Shown here: positions 46,115 through 56,291 of the stretch, one piece after another
Numbering within the stretch: position 1 is the stretch's first letter
How the letters are laid out: every line of letters starts with the position of its first letter
Source: Pelomyxa schiedti
Taxonomy: Eukaryota; Protista; Evosea
Reading direction: 5' to 3'
DNA: 64,000 nucleotides
NCBI GenBank assembly: GCA_020536535.1
Contig: JAHLWZ010000666.1
Location: 40,340-104,339, forward strand
Made by a program: the position numbers and the translations under genes
The notes under the pieces: model-generated
The model's input: the letters and a program-made list of their open reading frames with translations, nothing else
Told to the model about the DNA's origin: nothing
Databases searched by the model: none

Positions 46115-47597
46115 TTACCACATAGAGTCTTGCTCGTGGAATTCAGGGAGTGTCCAGTCTAACTTTGCTGTGGATATTACCGTCTCAAGGGGCACAATGT
46201 AGTCATTGAGGTCGTAAATGGAGGAGCTTGAGGAGTCCGAATCCTCGGCTCCGGTTCCTGTTTGTTGCCACTCGTTGCCGTCTTTGTCGGTGCGGTGGTT
46301 GAACAGGAATGCCAGGAGTTCGAGGTGGCCACTATCCTCGCGGATGATGACTTTCCAGAACATGTCCGGAACCCAGACGGCGAATTCATTGCCTGTGCCC
46401 ATTGTCTCCACATCGGCTGAGGTTCGCTCGAATGCCGGGCCAGCAATCACCCAGATTTTGCCGAATGTATCGGCCCATTTGCTGCATTTCTGCTCCAGCA
46501 TCAACCATATTCCGGCATTGAATACTTGGGTTTGAGGGCAAGCATTCATCATGTTGTGGGTCTCTTTTCCAGCAGTTTCACTGATGCGGTCTGCATGCTT
46601 TTTCATGCACATGTGACCTCTGGTTTCCGGCCTAACGTTAGGGTTATTTCAAGAAATCCAAGGCTTTTTTAAAAACAGTAACATACATCTTTCCCTTGTA
46701 GGATTTGTCATCAGGGGCCTCATGATTGTCAAACAAGCCCTTATCTGTTGCCCATTTTGGCCTTTGGTATTTCGGGAAGACGTAGTTCGAAGACACGGCC
46801 TTTATTTCATAGCTGACCCAGGTGGGTACTCCCATAAGGTCGCTTATCCCGTCGCCGTCGTCGTCATCCGGCCCATCAAAGCAAGAAGTGTAGGCAGTGA
46901 AGTTCCGAATGTAGTCGTCGCCAGCCTTTGGAGCATACTTTGCATGCGAGTACCCTGAGTCAGCAACAACTGCGCCGGTTTTCGGCTTGGGCTTGGGCTT
47001 GGACTTTGCCGACACTGGGTCGTCGGCCTCGGCGACGGCCTCGGGTAGGGCCTTCAGGGGCCCCAGAGAATCTGAAGCAGCGAGTGCCGAAGCACTAGCA
47101 GCAGTCGCGGAAGTAGACGAAGAAGAAGGGGTAGGAGTCCCGGAAGGGACGGTTAGTGACACCTTCAGAAGGAGGAAAGCGGGGGGCATGGAGGGCCGCT
47201 TGAGGGGCAGCTCCAGGTCGTAGTCCCCAGGTAAGGAGTTGGTTAGGGACAACTTGAGGCGCCACTGGGGCGCGGAGGAGGGGGACTCGGCGGCGTCGCC
47301 TGGCCAGACCTCGAGGAGCACGCGGCAGCGCGAGTGCGTCTCGTGCTCGAACTCGGCGGCGGGCGGCGGCGACGGCTGCGGCTGCCCGTGGGCGACGTGG
47401 ACGAGGCGGCGCGAGAGCTCGACCACCGCTGCTGGAGGTGTAAGAGCCGCGGCGGAAGATGAAGACGAAGTGGACTCGGGTGGCGGGATTATGGGTCGCC
47501 GGGGCACGTACTGGGTCACACAACGAATAACGAGGCCTGTGGACGTGGTGACATCACCGGACTTTACTCCCACCACCTCGACGCGAACTATACCCAT
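46115..47597 (-). CDS. DNA/RNA non-specific endonuclease (NucA/EndoG His-Me finger family) with N-terminal extension; one intron
   Basis: PTWVSYE, ETRGHM, HNMMNACPQ..VFNAGIWLMLE, IWVIAGP, VPDMFWKVII. Confidence 0.92.
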
Positions 47598-47826: not shown

Positions 47827-49803
47827 ATGCAAAAATTGAAGAGGGTGACGCGACAAAAACTTTATTTCCTCAAATAAAAAAGCGAGGGGGCACTTTTTTA
47901 CTCGCCACGTCCTTTTGTGCCAGATCTGCGTCGTTGGTCTCGTCATGGCTGCATTCGGTCACATAGATCTTCGTATGTTGACGAAGAAAAACGACCACGT
48001 TGTATGAGGTCTTTTTTTCCCTTTGTTGTGAGGTTGAGACGTGATAGGCTCAACTGCAAGAGTTGTATGGAGAAGCATGCAAACGGTTTTCTGTTAACCC
48101 AGACATTGCAGTGCACATATGTTTGCAAACCGGTTCCGAGTTCTTCAGATCAACCAGGCGTTACACTGACAGTGACCTTTTGCCACTCTGTGTGCTTGTT
48201 CAGAAAATGCAAGAAATTGTGAGATTCTTGGTGCTTGTTACTTTCTCAAACCTAGCAGAACAATCCTTGCAGTCCTTCCTTCAAAGGATTGAGCTTTAAG
48301 AATGGAGATATATCATCCAATGGGGCTCTTCTTCTTGCAAATGTATTGGCGACTGATAAACAGATAAAGTAGACAATAGATTGCATTTTGTTTCTCCCAC
48401 TGGATCTCACAGGAAAACAAAAGGTTACTTGACCTTTCAGAAAATAAGATAGGCACAAGAGGTTTTATAGCCCTAGCAGATGGTACCTTCACTACCTCAC
48501 GAAAAAAGAGTAAACCATTTTAGCCCTCCGTGAAAACACCACGCTCCTTCACCTTGACATGCATAGTAACAAATGTGGCTTTTATGGGGCTCAATATTTA
48601 GCACGGGCACTCGAGAGCTCTGCTCACTGTCTTGTTGATTTAAATATGGCCGATACTAGTATTGGCTTTGAAGGTGTTAGGTATCATAAGTGAACACTTC
48701 AGATTTCACACTTATATGGCGCAGACTTATGAGTGCTGCAGTGAAAGTCTTCAATGATGGAGTTAAAAAGCTAAACCATAATAAGACCACAATTAAGAAG
48801 AACTATCTTAACGTCAACTTGCTTACTAATTTTGTCCGTGAGGAGGTTTGTATCTATTACATGTTCTCTTCTCGCTTTTTATGAAAAAAAAAAAAACAGG
48901 TGTTGAATAGTATAACACATGGACTTGGCCTAATTTTGTCCATAATTGGGACTATAATACTTCTGGTGTCTTACTCCGATCAGGTGAACTCACTGTACGG
49001 TTTTGCTGGAGGCATATTCTGTTTCTCTATGATCGCCGTGTATTTGAACTCGTTTTGCTACCACACCTTTTTCAAGTTCCCTCTGGTGAAAAAGGTTGAC
49101 TGTATTCCTTTCAGCACTTTTTAACGGCTTTCAGTTGTTCCATCGTTTAGATAAACTGTCAATCTATTTTTTGATAGCAGGAACATATACACCTTATTCC
49201 CTTATTGCATTGCATGGCAATGTGAATTTCCTCTCCCAGACCAAGATCTTACATGCTGCAGGTTGGATGGGCCTTATGTGGATTTGTCTGGGCTCTTGCT
49301 GTAATTGGAGTGTACCTTGACTTTGCTTATTGGGGACAGTATACTCCCCCTCTTTTGTTTTATCTCCTTTTCATACCCGCAGGTTTGACAATATAAAGCT
49401 GGTCCTGTATGTAAGTATGTGAAATTAAATATTAAATCTCGCTATTTACTCTTGTTCTGCAGCTATGGGATGGTCAGCCGTAACAGTTGTCGTCCCTGTC
49501 ATTACGCACCCGACTTTACCATTATCCATGTTTGGTGCTTTATTCCTACTTCTGGGTGGAATCAGTTACACCGGGGGTGTCTATTTCTTCGTTAAGGATT
49601 CCGAGATTCCGGTATTTCTTTCCCACACTCCACCCACTTGCTTCTCTCCAACACCACTCACAACAAACCATTAGTTGTATCACAGCTACTGGCACGTCTT
49701 TGTTGTCCTAGGGACAGTCTGTCACTGGCTATCCATTTACTACTCCGTTATGACCATACCCACTGATGGACCCAGATACGACCACTTCATTTTCAGTCCA
49801 TAA
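47827..49803 (+). CDS. RNI-like leucine-rich repeats fused to a hemolysin III/PAQR seven-TM domain
   Basis: ISSNGALLLANVL, LRENTTLLHLDMHSNKCGFYGAQYLARAL; then REE/VLNSITHG, SFCYH, LDKLSIYFLIAGTYTP, AMGW, YTGGVYFF, HSYWHVFV. Start codon uncertain. Confidence 0.85.
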
Positions 49804-49983
49804 AAAAAAAACCTCGTCACCCTTGGGTCGGACAAAACAACAGAACACTTCAATTCAGGAGAAGAAATAAAATCTTCATTTTTTTTAAAAAAGCTTTTTC
49901 CAGCTCTCTCTACTGCTGTCGGCTGTGGGTTGAGGGCATAATTAAATTACACACGCCATACATAAAATATCGTCTCCTCGGCA

Positions 49984-51852
49984 CTACACAGCACCAACCT
50001 TCATTGGGTGTGCGTTCTCAATGGCTTCGATGAAGTCAGGAGGGAATATGTTCCTGTCATAGAAGCAGCAGCCGCGCACATCAAGTTCCTGATACACGCT
50101 TTTGGTTATTTTTTCCTCATAGGCAACCATCTCGTCTTGGAATAGTTTCTTGGCAGCCGGCTCAGGCTCAGATGGGAAGTACGGTACTTCCCCGATTGTG
50201 TGTAACAGAGTCTTGCCTGAATCAGCCATTGCCTTTCTGCATACCTCATAACCCCACTGTTCTCTCACAGTGGCCTTGACCCCCATCTAGACAGATAGTT
50301 AATAGAACTGCTGAACACGTGGGGGAAGAGTACCATCTCTGGAGTGGTATAACAGTCGTTGGGAACAATGTTGACTCTATGAGAGTCAAGTAGAAGCTTC
50401 GTGTTGATTCCCAATTGGCTTAGAATTCCAAAAATGTCGTCTATTTGCTTCTGTGATCGTAAAATGAGGAATGCTGCGCCAAGTGTAAGACCACGCAAGA
50501 TGTGCTCAACGGCAATTAGTAGTGCTATTTGTGGATGTGAATAACAGATGACACAGTGATCATGCACTTTAAGACTGTCCTATGTTTGTGGTGAGCTTAA
50601 GACATGGCTGTGAAAGGAAGGTAAACAATTGCGTCTTTTGCCGGAAGTACAGAAGAGTCAAGGCCGCGATACAGGCGTATAGGAGTTTCAGGTATATGAG
50701 CCGCAGTGGGCTAGTTGATGGAGATTAACACTTTTAAAATTTTAGTTATATATCACGAAATAATTCAATATATTCAACTACACACAGTAACAACTGGACG
50801 GGTTGGTCTATGAATCTTTGTAGCCTGTATGGCAACAACACCATCTGGTGTCATTGAAAGAAAACCAGAAGCACTGGAACCAGAAAAATTTACTAGGGTG
50901 CAACCCATGATGCCTAGTACAACTGCTGTTTTTTGGCAAGCGGGAGCAAGCTTCGTTGATGCTTCCCGAATTGCTTCCCTGCGGCACAGCTAAATAGAAC
51001 AGAAATCACGATGGAACGTGTACCACTCTGGCGATCCGATCGTTAGTGTTGCTATCATTTCTGAAAGTTTTCCAAGATCGCTTTGGATAGAAGAGAGGGA
51101 TGTACAGGTCTGGGAGAGTGTTTGTGCTGGTATTTAGGTAAGAAAGAATAAGTTGCTGATTCAAAGGCAGTTACCAAGTTCTTGTTGTGATGGGGCGACT
51201 GGCGGCAAATTTTGTAATTGTCTCGTGTATGCTAACCCCTGTATTATAGAGGTGGTACATCAGTAGAGGTGGATAGGGAACAACGTATACCGTTTCCCAT
51301 CCCACAGGATTGGGACTGCTCCCAACAACAGAAGAAAGGTGCTTAGTAAGAGTTTTGCACATCTTTTATTTGTTGGCGTTTTTTGTTTGGTTAGAGTAGC
51401 TGTTGGTGACTGATCAGAAGTGCCAACCTCCACAGGGTCAACGTTTTCCCCCGGTTCCAATGAATCACAAGAAAAAGTGCCACATGACAATTGGTGACTT
51501 GGTAATGCTGGGTCGGGTGTGCTTTGCAAGATGGCAAACAGTGTGTCCCCATCTACCACGCCCAGAGATTGCAACAAAGTACTTTCCAGAGACCTCAATT
51601 TTCTCCCCTTGTAAACGAATGACGTTTTGGCCTGGGGCCACTTCCGTTCTACACTCACTCTACTCGTCAGGTCTGACAGCGTCGCCTTTGGCTCATTTAA
51701 AAAAAAAGTGCAACCAACAAAAAAAAAAGGGGGGGGGGGGAAATGAATAAACGAAACGACATGCTTCATACATGCTGTGGCAACTCTACATCGAGTGTCT
51801 CCTTCTCCTTAGGAAATCGCACGGACAAATGAAGGCCCGCATGCTCCGTCAT
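49984..51852 (-). CDS. Ubiquitin-like domain, helical middle region and C-terminal MEDS (DcmR-type sensory) domain; multi-exon
   Basis: UBL: LSVRF...TLSDLTSRV...FVYKGRKL...LQSLGVVDGDTLFAI. MEDS: LKVHDHCVICY...HILRGL...HTIGEV...VAYEEKI...GCCFYDRNIFPPDFIEAIENAHP. Joined by a phase-0 intron at 50711-50785. Confidence 0.75.
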
Positions 51853-52207: not shown

Positions 52208-55200
52208 TCATGATGAACCAGTCATACTGGGAACAATTTCAAGTAGTATTTTAGCAAGGCGTTGTCTTTCTCTGGTAGGGACTGATGACGGATTATCACG
52301 ATATTGTACAAACAATCCAGTGGTGAGCCGAGTCACACACACAGCCTTTACGTCAATCAACCGGTGTCTATCAGAATCACTGAGACTGCCGAATGTATCC
52401 GCGCTGTTGCGCGAAGCTTCTGTTACTGTTGTGAAGAGTCCCTTTATCTTCAGTGCGGAATCTGGAAAGAGGTTTGACTTTTCCATGATCTAGTTAGTGT
52501 TCAGTTTTAAATCGGACAGTGGTTTCTTTGATTCACACCTTATGGACTGATAAAACCCGAAGCCACATTGTGAGTGAGCTTTTATCTGTAGTACTTGAAA
52601 TAATAGCTACTACAGATGTGATTTTCTCCTTGATTTCTTCGTCCTCTACAGGATGTCAAAGCCAAAGTCACAACCAAACGGAATAACCATTTCTTTTGCA
52701 GGCCGACATAATCGAATACACCGATTCGTGATTGTTATTTGTCTGAGGTGGTGTGAGGCCATTACATTTACAACACAAGATATGCCTTGTTTCTACTTGC
52801 TCCGAGGTCCAGTAAGGCATCTAGAACTTTTGTATTTCCCTGGTTATGATTGAGTAGGAAAACGTGAGGGAGTGTTTCTCTCTACCGATCGAACGGCAAT
52901 GTGACAGGGAGTGTCACCACTTATCCGAGGAAGTTAGACACAATTTACAATGGCAGATGAGTTACTTGTTGTCTACAGCATGTAGGTCGATGCCTCGTTG
53001 GACTAAGGCAAAGCATATGTGTTCACAATTGGCAAAAGGGTGCTTAGCCACCAAATGCAAAAGTGTTGATCCTTCAATCAGAGTTGACCAAACTAGCTTG
53101 ATTGATACAATTGTAAATACCATCCTCTAGTTTTGTGGTCACATCGATTGGATGACTGCTGATTAGTATGGACATCGCGCAATCAACTTTCTCGCCAGAA
53201 GAAAGTGCCAACATTAGTGGTGTCATGCCACTAGTGTTCTTTTGTGTGGATACATGCTGAGACAACAGAAGTGCCTTAGAAATTTGAGTCAACGCTCGAA
53301 GAGGATCAGCTAATTACCTTTGTCATGCCAAGATGGTTAGAGGATACAGCAATATGGAGCGCTGTATTGCCATTGGGGTCAGTTGCTTGTGACAGATTCC
53401 TTTTTTGTTTTTAAACTCTGTTAGGGATATATTGAAAAGGAAAAGACTCACGGGTCATTGCGCAACATTTCCTTCATAAGGGGCACGTTGCCTTCAGATA
53501 CAGTTTCAAGGAATTTTTTGCACTGTGAAGTTGAATATAATGAAGGAGTGATGAAAATATTGTACCACTTGACTTGGGTCAACGGGTTTTGAGGCCTCCT
53601 TAGGTCGAATTAGTTTTGAAAAGGTATTTTTTTAATTTTTGTTTACATCCAATGCTTTTTGTAAAAGAGCAGTAATGGCGGGGTTATTCAATCTGGCAGC
53701 CCAAACCATGGGAGACTCGGACTTGGCGTTTGTCTTAGTTGGGTCGGCCCCATGGAGCAATAGTTGTTCTATTACTTCTTGATTTCCCTCCGAAATGCTC
53801 AGAATCTGTCAATTGAAAGGATTGCATACCTTCATTACTGCTAGATGAAGAGGGGTCTCTCCATTTGCATTTTGGGCGTTGATGTGTCCATGTCTAGAAA
53901 GTGTAAGTCTCGGAGATGTGTTAGGAAACTACTTTTTCTTAAAAATTGGTAAAAATCGAGGTAGAGAAGGGTGCCGCGACAAGTAGTGAAGTGGTGTATT
54001 ATCTGTAGAATTGAATGTCAGTGAACTGTGAGTGTGTAAAGGTAGTCTTTCCATCTTCGTTAGTAGCATTCAAGTCAATGTGTTCTTGTTGTATAAGTTC
54101 CCAGATAATTTCCTATGCGACCCATTAATTATAGTAAGGTCGGAACAAGCAAGTGTACTTCGTGGTTTTCTGAAGCTGCAATGTGAAGGCATGTCCACAT
54201 TCTGTCGTCCTGTAATGGGAAAAGAATGAGTTTGATAACATTAGACACAATCCTACAGTGAGATAGCAGGAGGCCTCGTATCTTAGCAGAAGCTTGACAC
54301 TCTTTAGTTGTCCTGCTTTGCATGCATAGTGTAATGCTAAAAGGGTGTGACAAATATGACGAATTAACTTCGTATACCTGTCATGTCGTGTGTGGCTGGT
54401 GAATTTATATACTTCCTGTTTGCATCAAGGAGTTCCTCTAATTCGTCAGCTCCTGGGAAAAATTTCTAGTTGGAACAAAAGGGACTGGAGAAGATTGCTC
54501 ACCTGCTTGGGCCGCCTCTATTATCCGCGATACGATGGCCTTTTTATAGAGTTCGCGATCTTTTTTCTTTAGGAGTAAACACTGTTATTTGTTACATCAG
54601 TGTTGTGGGGAATTTGGTTACATCGGAAGAAGGTGTAGTTCTGAATATCCGAATTCTGGACTTTTCCAGTTTCTGTCAAGAGGTTATTGGCAATACCCTA
54701 GGGAAATATGAACAAACTGTGGAGCTTGATGACCGTGTTGCTGACTTTTCAACCTTTTCAACCGTTTTTTGTACTTCTTTATCTCTTTTCCGTTGTTCTT
54801 TTTCTGATATCAGTGTAATGGTGGCTACTTTGGGCACTAATGCTTTGATTTCGTCAGTAGTGGTTTTCTTTTTAAAAATGTCAATGTAAATAGGGAAACA
54901 ATTTGTTACCTTCTGTGCGGGGTCAGATAAAGGATATTTGTCCAAGTGCGGATTTGTCAAATATGAATTACATAATTGTGCAAGTGCAACAAGTGATGAT
55001 TCTCGTTCCTCCACAGGCACTTGAGCAGGTGGAGGCACTTGTCCAGGGGTTGTTATTTGCTAAATTGCATCAGTGAGAAGAATGTAACCCTTAAAAAAAG
55101 AGCAAACTGATATGCTGTCCAAGTATCCTTTCATCCGTCCTTGATTGGAGTCAAGGAACGAATTTAAAGGCATCATAAAGGATTCTCTGAATGTTACACA

Positions 55201-56291
55201 GTTTGCAAGGTTCTGTATTGTCTTGGAAATAAGTACTAGGTTGCGCCTTGTATCCAATGAAGGTGATTCTAAGTGAACTTAATCTAAACATTTTCTTTCA
55301 CATAAAGAATACCCTCCAAAATTCCTGTGTTGTCTGGGGCAACAATTGCTGGACAAAAATATCGAAGAACTACAAATCCTCCCACACAAATGAGTGCCGA
55401 TTCAGGGAATCTAGTGTGGAAAAAAACCAAACAACGCGGGATAACGGTTATTGGTCAAACAAAAGATGAGGTGGTTACTTTTCTCCACAGTACTGCTTCA
55501 AATACGAACATGCTATCCTGAATCGTCTGGGTCCACTTAGGTTAAAGAAAATGTCAACGACCAACATACAAAGGATATTTGTCGGCACTTGCTACAATTG
55601 CATCGAACACTCTCTGTATAATTTGTTGTAGCTGAGCAACATTTCTTTCTAGCATACTTGGATCAACCAAATTAATGGGATTGATCTATGTTGTTGGTAG
55701 ATTTAACAGCGGGAACACAGAGCAAGTGACACACTTCAAGTGAGCCAAAGTTCCCTGCAACAATAGCCTTAATAGGCTCTATCAAGGTCTGTTGGAGGTA
55801 CAGCTGCCCATCTTCCAACTTCGACCAGGCTGACATCATTTTTGATGCCAAACTATTTGATCGGAACAGAGTGCCGGGTTGACCTTTGTGTGATAATAAG
55901 CACATTGTGTCCTTGGAATAGAGCAAGGCTGCATACTGGTGGATTTAATTTCCTTCTTTATGAGGAATTCTATCAGAGGAAGAGCGCGACCCTCAGGCTC
56001 CAGTACTTTTACACACAGATCAGCAATAAGCTGAGAGTCTTTTGTAGCAGCTACTGTGCATAGCCATTCCCCAAATTCCGGGGTCAGCACAATCTATAGT
56101 AAGTGTTGGGTTTTGTTATTGTTTGGAACTTTTCCCTACACAACAAAGAGCCTATTAAAAAACAAAACGAAACAACACGAACCAAAACCAAAAAAAAAAG
56201 TGTTCTTTGTTTGGTTTGGTTTGGTTTATGTTGTGGCACCACACCCACAATACAAAATCAGTAGACCACGTACCCTTCGGAACTCTTCCAT
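52208..56291 (-). CDS. RasGAP-domain protein with ankyrin repeats, multi-exon
   Basis: GTLFRSNSLASKM, VVLRYFCPAIVAP, RNLVLISKTIQNLAN; ankyrin motifs WTCLHIAA, NTPLHY, GETPLHLA, GMTPLMLA, GDTPCHIA. Confidence 0.92.

Follow-up and report, generated by a model that had tools for sequence, protein, structure and literature searches.

A spliced gene of Pelomyxa schiedti combines a ubiquitin-like domain with a prokaryote-type MEDS domain

The amoeba Pelomyxa schiedti has a spliced gene of nine exons in which a ubiquitin-like (UBL) domain and a MEDS domain (Pfam: PF14417) are encoded in one frame, as confirmed by RNA contigs. The encoded protein, Pelo_8467, is no singleton: it is one member of a small, old family that we detected in three eukaryote datasets. 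Positions are given for the window, the 64,000-nucleotide stretch of contig JAHLWZ010000666.1 that was analysed, and the features of the gene are collected in Table 1.

Gene structure and transcript evidence

Joining the exons at the junctions of the RNA contigs gives 1404 nt and 467 amino acids without internal stops. This frame is identical to GenBank entry KAH3759750.1 (Pelo_8467, Pelomyxa schiedti), which is annotated as a hypothetical protein and in which all exon translations are found at the expected places. Four single-cell RNA runs from public data, all of one sample, contain the stretch, and contigs of three of these runs provided the junctions. As assembled contigs from one study, they show junctions and not expression level or transcript ends. 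Three contigs of 1311, 1369 and 1327 nt each extend from the UBL exon (exon 2) past the MEDS stop. Seven introns are skipped in the contigs (introns 2 to 8 in Table 1), all of which have GT-AG ends on the minus strand. For the eighth, at 51771-51686, a contig of run X2 has a loose end that corresponds to the last 10 bases of exon 1. Window position 50490 is G instead of A in runs X2 and X3, a synonymous difference in Gly315 which is probably allele or strain variation.

The first-pass annotation, made from the DNA letters and a list of open reading frames, had proposed that unconnected reading frame fragments are spliced into one frame, and it had named three of the eight introns. The RNA contigs bear this out: the 75-nt GT-AG intron in phase 0 at 50785-50711, which links the two halves of the gene, is skipped, as are the introns at 50626-50580 and 50333-50287, and the exon preceding MEDS has no Met, in line with the missing ATG it had pointed out. 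It had also considered a transcript that ends at a TGA near 50775, accompanied by a separate MEDS transcript. The contigs speak against this, as they connect the UBL exon with the MEDS stop and none of the RNA contigs of the one sample represents a separate MEDS transcript. That the combination is an artefact, made up of two adjacent genes or of prokaryotic contamination, is negligibly probable in our view. The RNA comes from one sample and in the form of contigs rather than reads, but spliced contigs span both halves, an intron lies within MEDS itself, the 104-kb contig carries eukaryotic neighbour genes, and paralogs as well as a second genome share the layout.

Table 1. Features of the UBL-MEDS gene in the window, with the corresponding residues of Pelo_8467 (aa)
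Feature	Window positions	Strand	Remarks
Whole coding span	49984..51852	-	9 exons, 467 aa, equals KAH3759750.1
Exon 1, aa 1-27	51772..51852	-	ATG and UBL strands one and two
Intron 1, 86 nt, phase 0	51686..51771	-	
Exon 2, aa 28-113	51428..51685	-	remaining UBL, linker, short conserved strand
Intron 2, 65 nt, phase 0	51363..51427	-	
Exon 3, aa 114-137	51291..51362	-	first middle helix, conserved Trp135
Intron 3, 52 nt, phase 0	51239..51290	-	
Exon 4, aa 138-158	51175..51238	-	
Intron 4, 48 nt, phase 1	51127..51174	-	
Exon 5, aa 159-192	51024..51126	-	long helix one of the hairpin
Intron 5, 45 nt, phase 2	50979..51023	-	
Exon 6, aa 193-257	50786..50978	-	long helix two, beta-hairpin
Intron 6, 75 nt, phase 0, 24% GC, stops in 3/3 frames	50711..50785	-	its splicing links UBL half to MEDS half
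Exon 7, aa 258-285	50627..50710	-	linker, low model confidence, without Met
Intron 7, 47 nt, phase 0	50580..50626	-	
Exon 8, aa 286-367	50334..50579	-	MEDS first half, His293
Intron 8, 47 nt, phase 0	50287..50333	-	within MEDS
Exon 9, aa 368-467 and TAG	49984..50286	-	MEDS second half; Tyr423-Glu424, Cys441, His460
UBL domain, aa 5-84, split by intron 1	51515..51840	-	fold and family profile
Conserved middle, aa about 93-245	50822..51490	-	four helices and beta-hairpin
MEDS domain (PF14417), aa 292-461	50005..50561	-	KaiC/RecA-like fold without P-loop

Among the neighbouring genes, a spliced gene for a membrane protein of the HlyIII/PAQR family is found on the plus strand at window 48900-49874. 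It is convergent with the UBL-MEDS gene, and the ends of the RNA contigs of both genes are about 25 bases apart. Further away, the minus-strand frames at window 46115-47597 end with a DNA/RNA non-specific endonuclease domain (Pfam: PF01223, E 1e-22) and lie in a GC-richer stretch.

Ubiquitin-like domain

Domain profile searches were run on our own model exon by exon, and the whole-protein work was done with the KAH3759750.1 record. Structure modelling and alignment show that the front of the protein is a ubiquitin fold which is non-conjugatable and retains the hydrophobic patch. For the predicted model of aa 5-84, the best Foldseek rows are ubiquilin-3 and ubiquitin, with a TM of 0.85-0.9 by target and an rmsd of 1.2-1.9. 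In exhaustive structure alignments with Z 13-14, the UBLs of ubiquitin, BAG6, Dsk2, BAG1 and midnolin are tied. The Pfam ubiquitin model scores 19.3 bits, which is under its curated cut-off of 25.4, and reaches 25.3 bits in a relative from a metagenome eukaryote. A profile of six family UBLs matches ubiquilin-3 at E 3e-6. Both the fold and this profile support the UBL which the first-pass annotation had placed from 51852 to about 51530.

In the family UBL profile V51, F77 and I79 align to I44, H68 and V70 of ubiquitin, and the I44-equivalent strand together with the Gly-Arg loop is better kept in the family than the rest of the UBL. The di-glycine after the UBL is absent, and the domain ends with Leu80-Gln81-Ser82-Thr83. 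N-terminal UBLs without a di-glycine often bind proteasome receptors or p97 cofactors via the I44 patch. Rad23, Dsk2/ubiquilin, Ddi1 and midnolin have such an N-terminal ubiquitin fold with a hydrophobic patch, followed by a flexible linker and a C-terminal folded module, and Pelo_8467 shares this layout. Unlike in these proteins, the C-terminal module of Pelo_8467 is a prokaryote-type pseudo-ATPase, and binding by its UBL is a prediction. Neither UBA nor STI1 domains gave a profile match, and a retroviral-protease domain was not detected in the protein. A structural match to the Catch domain of midnolin was not observed: the midnolin chain 9wbg matches the UBL alone and is not among the best rows for the model of the middle region, where its absence does not exclude a match.

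MEDS domain

The Pfam MEDS model covers the domain completely (profile positions 1-161) and scores 50.1 bits on the whole protein (cut-off 29.8, E 3.6e-13). Searched separately, exon 8 matches with E 7e-4 and exon 9 with E 4e-7 and 30.3 bits. In the predicted model, aa 282-467 superpose on KaiC (8dba) with Z 13.1 and rmsd 3.3 over 163 aligned residues, and also on SSO2452 and FlaH (Z 12-13 for the KaiC-like ATPases, at 8-12% identity). The complete MEDS domain described in the first-pass annotation is thus present, with a KaiC-like fold. This fold agrees with the classification in PMC5847659, where MEDS is listed as an inactivated KaiC-like ATPase domain (iKaiC) and is reported to occur also as a response-regulator output. 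KaiC, FlaH and SSO2452 have the fold in common with the MEDS of Pelo_8467, but the P-loop (Walker A) after the first MEDS strand is absent. The domain is therefore not expected to hydrolyse ATP, which points to a regulatory or structural role. We rejected a Walker A look-alike at aa 386-393 (window 50209-50232) as a chance match, since it lies at the wrong position of the fold and is found in two of seven members.

His293, Tyr423, Glu424, Cys441 and His460 are 95-99% conserved in 77 prokaryotic MEDS domains and present in all eukaryotic rows covering them. Tyr362, Gly391 and Tyr443 of the MEDS family are also kept in Pelo_8467. Other prokaryotic MEDS invariants have changed, namely Arg at 396, Trp at 403 and Asn at 428, and in Pelo_8467 Cys at 295. 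Going by the alignment, a binding site is favoured, since two His, a Cys and a Glu have persisted over a long branch; the kept residues may also have a structural role. PMC11507031 describes the sensor role of MEDS as predicted, with Anantharaman and Aravind 2005 as its source. Small hydrocarbon derivatives as ligands are likewise a prediction at the level of the family, and we found no ligand for any MEDS domain in the literature searched.

We compared Pelo_8467 with prokaryotic MEDS systems, which are DcmR-type regulators, archaeal MEDS-PAS-histidine kinases, actinobacterial anti-sigma factors of the RsbA/PrsR type and MEDS-REC proteins. They have the invariant His, Tyr-Glu, Cys-x-Tyr and His in common with Pelo_8467, as well as the KaiC-like fold without P-loop. 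In contrast to them, Pelo_8467 has introns, the fusion to a UBL, an insertion ahead of the Tyr-Glu helix and at most 25% identity. Furthermore, its MEDS is C-terminal, whereas most of the prokaryotic proteins fetched have it at the N-terminus. Kinase, PAS, REC, HTH or anti-sigma partner domains were not found in Pelo_8467 by Pfam and NCBIfam; there is a weak match of the NCBIfam model RsbA_anti_sig with E 4e-4 in Pelo_8467 and 3e-7 in a paralog.

Middle region

The conserved middle is predicted to fold into two short helices, a long antiparallel helical hairpin and a beta-hairpin. Compared by shape with the PDB and the Atlas, it matched generic helical hairpins only (Z up to 8.7, TM up to 0.45), and we found no internal duplication between the middle and MEDS. 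The first-pass annotation had called the region possibly BAG6-like, and a relationship to BAG6 is plausible at the level of a lead. A language-model feature search with aa 88-250 ranks two clusters annotated with Pfam BAG6 highest (0.81 and 0.78), ahead of a third cluster, a plant UBL-domain protein (0.76). These are lead-level scores, all within the range of shuffled sequences, and a single family is common to just four of the ten best matches. The Pfam BAG6 model (PF12057) matches 18 residues of the first long helix in one paralog only, with E 0.048, and ten of the 11 aligned family members have no BAG6 profile match. Searched in the P. schiedti genome, the model gave no match, and neither did the control. 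The structure search of the Atlas with the middle returned no BAG6 cluster. Moreover, the C-terminal BAG-similar region of BAG6 is absent, as the C-terminal 176 residues are MEDS.

BAG6 (BAT3/Scythe) and the plant BAG6-like UBL proteins have the order of UBL, linker and helical region in common with Pelo_8467, which differs by having MEDS in the place of the C-terminal region of BAG6 and by its length of 467 aa. Animal BAG6 is far longer than that. One could go further than a relationship of the middle and regard the whole front half as a divergent BAG6 copy (UBL and BAG6 helical domain) in which MEDS has replaced the C-terminal half. The protein would then act in triage or as a holdase in the manner of BAG6, and MEDS would be its new module for regulation or client binding. 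The feature-search clusters, the short profile match and the BAG6 UBL among the tied best folds agree with such a descent, but we regard it as rather unlikely given the range of the shuffled scores, the structure search, the ten members without a match and the missing C-terminal domain. It is compatible with the explanation of function preferred below, of which it is a stronger version, and its probability overlaps with those of the adaptor and scaffold readings given there.

Family members and shared architecture

At least seven MEDS loci were found in the P. schiedti genome (52.4 Mb in 5337 contigs), five of which combine UBL, middle and MEDS. In the two divergent loci (L028 on contig C1071 and L029 on contig C891) there is a helical hairpin with MEDS and no UBL was detected. 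Mastigella eilhardi has two proteins with middle and MEDS, also without a detected UBL, and these proteins may be incomplete at the 5' end. The third dataset is a metagenome eukaryote (ENA ERZ21831265 and related Logan runs including ERR12015700) with 38-40% GC, introns of 35-40 nt and contigs of up to 200 kb, which is rich in introns and possibly an archamoeba. It has five loci, at least three of them with UBL.

Overall identity among the paralogs is 27-56%, and their UBLs are more divergent than that of Pelo_8467. The nearest paralog is Pelo_11478, which is about 50% identical with dN about 0.29 and dS about 2.8, the latter being near saturation. Comparison of the coding sequences shows a duplicated family under purifying selection. 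Pelo_11478 is preceded by a copy of the ankyrin gene that lies upstream of Pelo_8467, which marks it as a segmental duplicate, and the pair of UBL-MEDS gene and ankyrin gene is, to judge by the alignment, an old segmental duplication. A phase-0 intron can be drawn at nearly the same place of MEDS in all 12 genomic loci, and this position is read-backed for the Pelo_8467 junction only. It lies two codons past the conserved Tyr362 in ten of the 12 loci and five codons past it in Pelo_8467 and its duplicate.

Several observations concern the loci and their annotation. The ankyrin-repeat gene at window 52210-56061 and its counterpart at L024:3539-7501 (contig C817) have 65-69% DNA identity. KAH3759008.1, annotated as 'beta-galactosidase bgaB' with 1448 aa (L025:1120-2960, C721), is a UBL-MEDS paralog that is apparently merged with the next gene; there is a genomic stop directly after MEDS, and a spliced Logan protein ends at the same point. 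KAH3758906.1 (L027:4638-4900, C729) begins in the middle of the UBL, and an upstream ATG exon and the missing part of the UBL are present in the genome. The loci of the metagenome eukaryote (L030, L032, L034, L036 and L037) are cut up by prokaryotic gene calling.

No other eukaryotes were found among 1.84 billion representatives, in a search that found one prokaryotic MEDS and would miss distant members. Word searches with family alignments yielded sequences of P. schiedti, Mastigella and the metagenome eukaryote plus a single bacterial MEDS and nothing else, and a word search with exon 9 gave no candidates. Two pattern scans of JGI metagenomes, which are weak because introns can split exact patterns, confirmed nothing, and a genome scan with the nearest prokaryotic match found nothing. 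For the first-pass annotation, a wide distribution of UBL with MEDS in eukaryotes would have counted against its proposal; among the datasets searched, relatives occur in the three named above.

Origin of the eukaryotic MEDS

For the phylogeny, 77 prokaryotic MEDS domains were collected from about 1,290 genome searches, a sample in which Bacillota, Desulfobacterota and Actinomycetota are barely covered and symbiont genomes are not included by name. The eukaryotic MEDS form one clade, with SH-aLRT 97 in a tree of 89 rows and 100/99 in a tree of 58 rows, on a stem of 0.9-1.3 changes per site. None of the prokaryotic MEDS in the sample is more than 24.6% identical to them. Within the clade, a Mastigella protein groups with one of the P. 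schiedti paralogs (98/93 in the 58-row tree, 68 in another tree), and this suggests a duplication before the genera split.

The simplest reading of these trees is that MEDS came from a prokaryote by lateral transfer in one old event, because its eukaryotic range is narrow and its prokaryotic range wide. As best explanation, the fusion would have happened once, in or before the common ancestor of Pelomyxa and Mastigella. The horizontal acquisition proposed in the first-pass annotation is supported as far as a prokaryotic origin is the simplest reading, and no specific donor is supported. We did not accept an actinobacterial donor: under LG+G4 the clade groups with one Streptantibioticus MEDS and a metagenomic MEDS-kinase (99/97), but support drops to 57 and 27/87 under mixture models, and all three are long branches. 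In the Pseudomonadota sample, none of 251 genomes had MEDS at E 1e-8.

The first-pass annotation had also brought up methanogenic symbionts. The host does carry one, as P. schiedti depends on the methanogen Ca. Methanoregula pelomyxae (PMC10579272). If MEDS had come from the lineage of this endosymbiont, the amoeba could monitor metabolites of its symbiont, and it would fit that MEDS occurs commonly among Halobacteriota (29 of the 121 genomes) and that the profile scores are highest for archaeal proteins (about 65-76 bits). We nevertheless consider such a descent very unlikely. No prokaryotic MEDS comes closer than the identity given above, the eukaryotic stem is long, its sister row is never archaeal, and an AU test of one archaeal pair, picked once the tree was known, rejects it as sister (p 0.007). 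A recent gain from a methanogen symbiont is not supported, nor is the link of the symbiont to MEDS, given a family older than the split of Pelomyxa and Mastigella and no close archaeal MEDS in the sample.

Proposed function and alternatives

Our preferred reading, held tentatively and short of calling it probable, is a soluble three-part UBL adaptor in which MEDS is a ligand- or metal-gated regulatory pseudo-ATPase domain. The UBL would dock the protein on ubiquitin-binding machinery, such as proteasome receptors or p97 cofactors, and the helical hairpin would dimerise or hold a client. MEDS would bind a small ligand or a metal via the kept polar residues, and this binding could switch the docking of the UBL or the turnover of the protein itself. 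A soluble protein is suggested by the absence of any strongly hydrophobic stretch of 19 residues. The recurrence of UBL, middle and MEDS in five P. schiedti loci and in three loci of the metagenome eukaryote argues for an adaptor, and the two P. schiedti loci and both Mastigella proteins without a detected UBL argue against it. As there is no UBA or STI1, the holding of clients has no visible module, and the low pTM of the predicted model (0.43) gives no support for contacts between the domains.

With the same origin and anatomy, MEDS might sense nothing at all and offer, like other inactivated KaiC/RecA folds, a pseudo-ATPase surface for protein binding or oligomerisation, in which case the protein would be a constitutive scaffold or substrate adaptor. 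This is a credible if doubtful alternative. It is in agreement with a KaiC fold that lacks the P-loop, with the iKaiC and response-regulator output listing (PMC5847659), with the C-terminal place of MEDS and with the loss of Arg396, Trp403 and Asn428. What tips us towards the gated adaptor is that His293, Glu424, Cys441 and His460 are kept over the long branch and in all paralogs at 27-56% identity, which seems to exceed the need of a plain surface. Quite unlikely in comparison is a UBL unrelated to the proteasome, serving as a generic interaction module in some other signalling or chaperone pathway. The UBL scores below the Pfam cut-off, the paralogs are still more divergent, and the UBLs of BAG1, SUMO-like proteins and splicing factors score like those of shuttle proteins, but the strand equivalent to I44 and the Gly-Arg loop are just the part that was kept best. 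The gated adaptor can also be taken a step further, to a MEDS ligand (e.g. a fermentation or symbiont-derived metabolite) that gates a BAG6-like UBL adaptor, with seven paralogs reading different signals. We consider this a long shot; if true, a single component would form a ligand-gated degradation switch, which would also provide a handle on the ligand of MEDS.

Significance

In the literature searched we found no report of a eukaryotic MEDS or of a MEDS-UBL fusion and no mention of MEDS together with Pelomyxa; the MEDS papers found concern prokaryotes. New are the UBL-MEDS architecture and its small family; both domains were known before, as were UBL adaptors whose C-terminal modules vary. 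The family clearly illustrates how a prokaryotic domain with a regulatory role, and not an enzyme, gained introns, joined a eukaryotic module, was duplicated and was kept. Residues retained after the transfer point to the functional core of MEDS, and the proteins make the question of its predicted ligand testable. If MEDS gates a proteasome adaptor, an anaerobic host would have a novel means of coupling protein turnover and metabolism; if the protein is a scaffold only, it would be an interesting lineage-specific domain shuffle.
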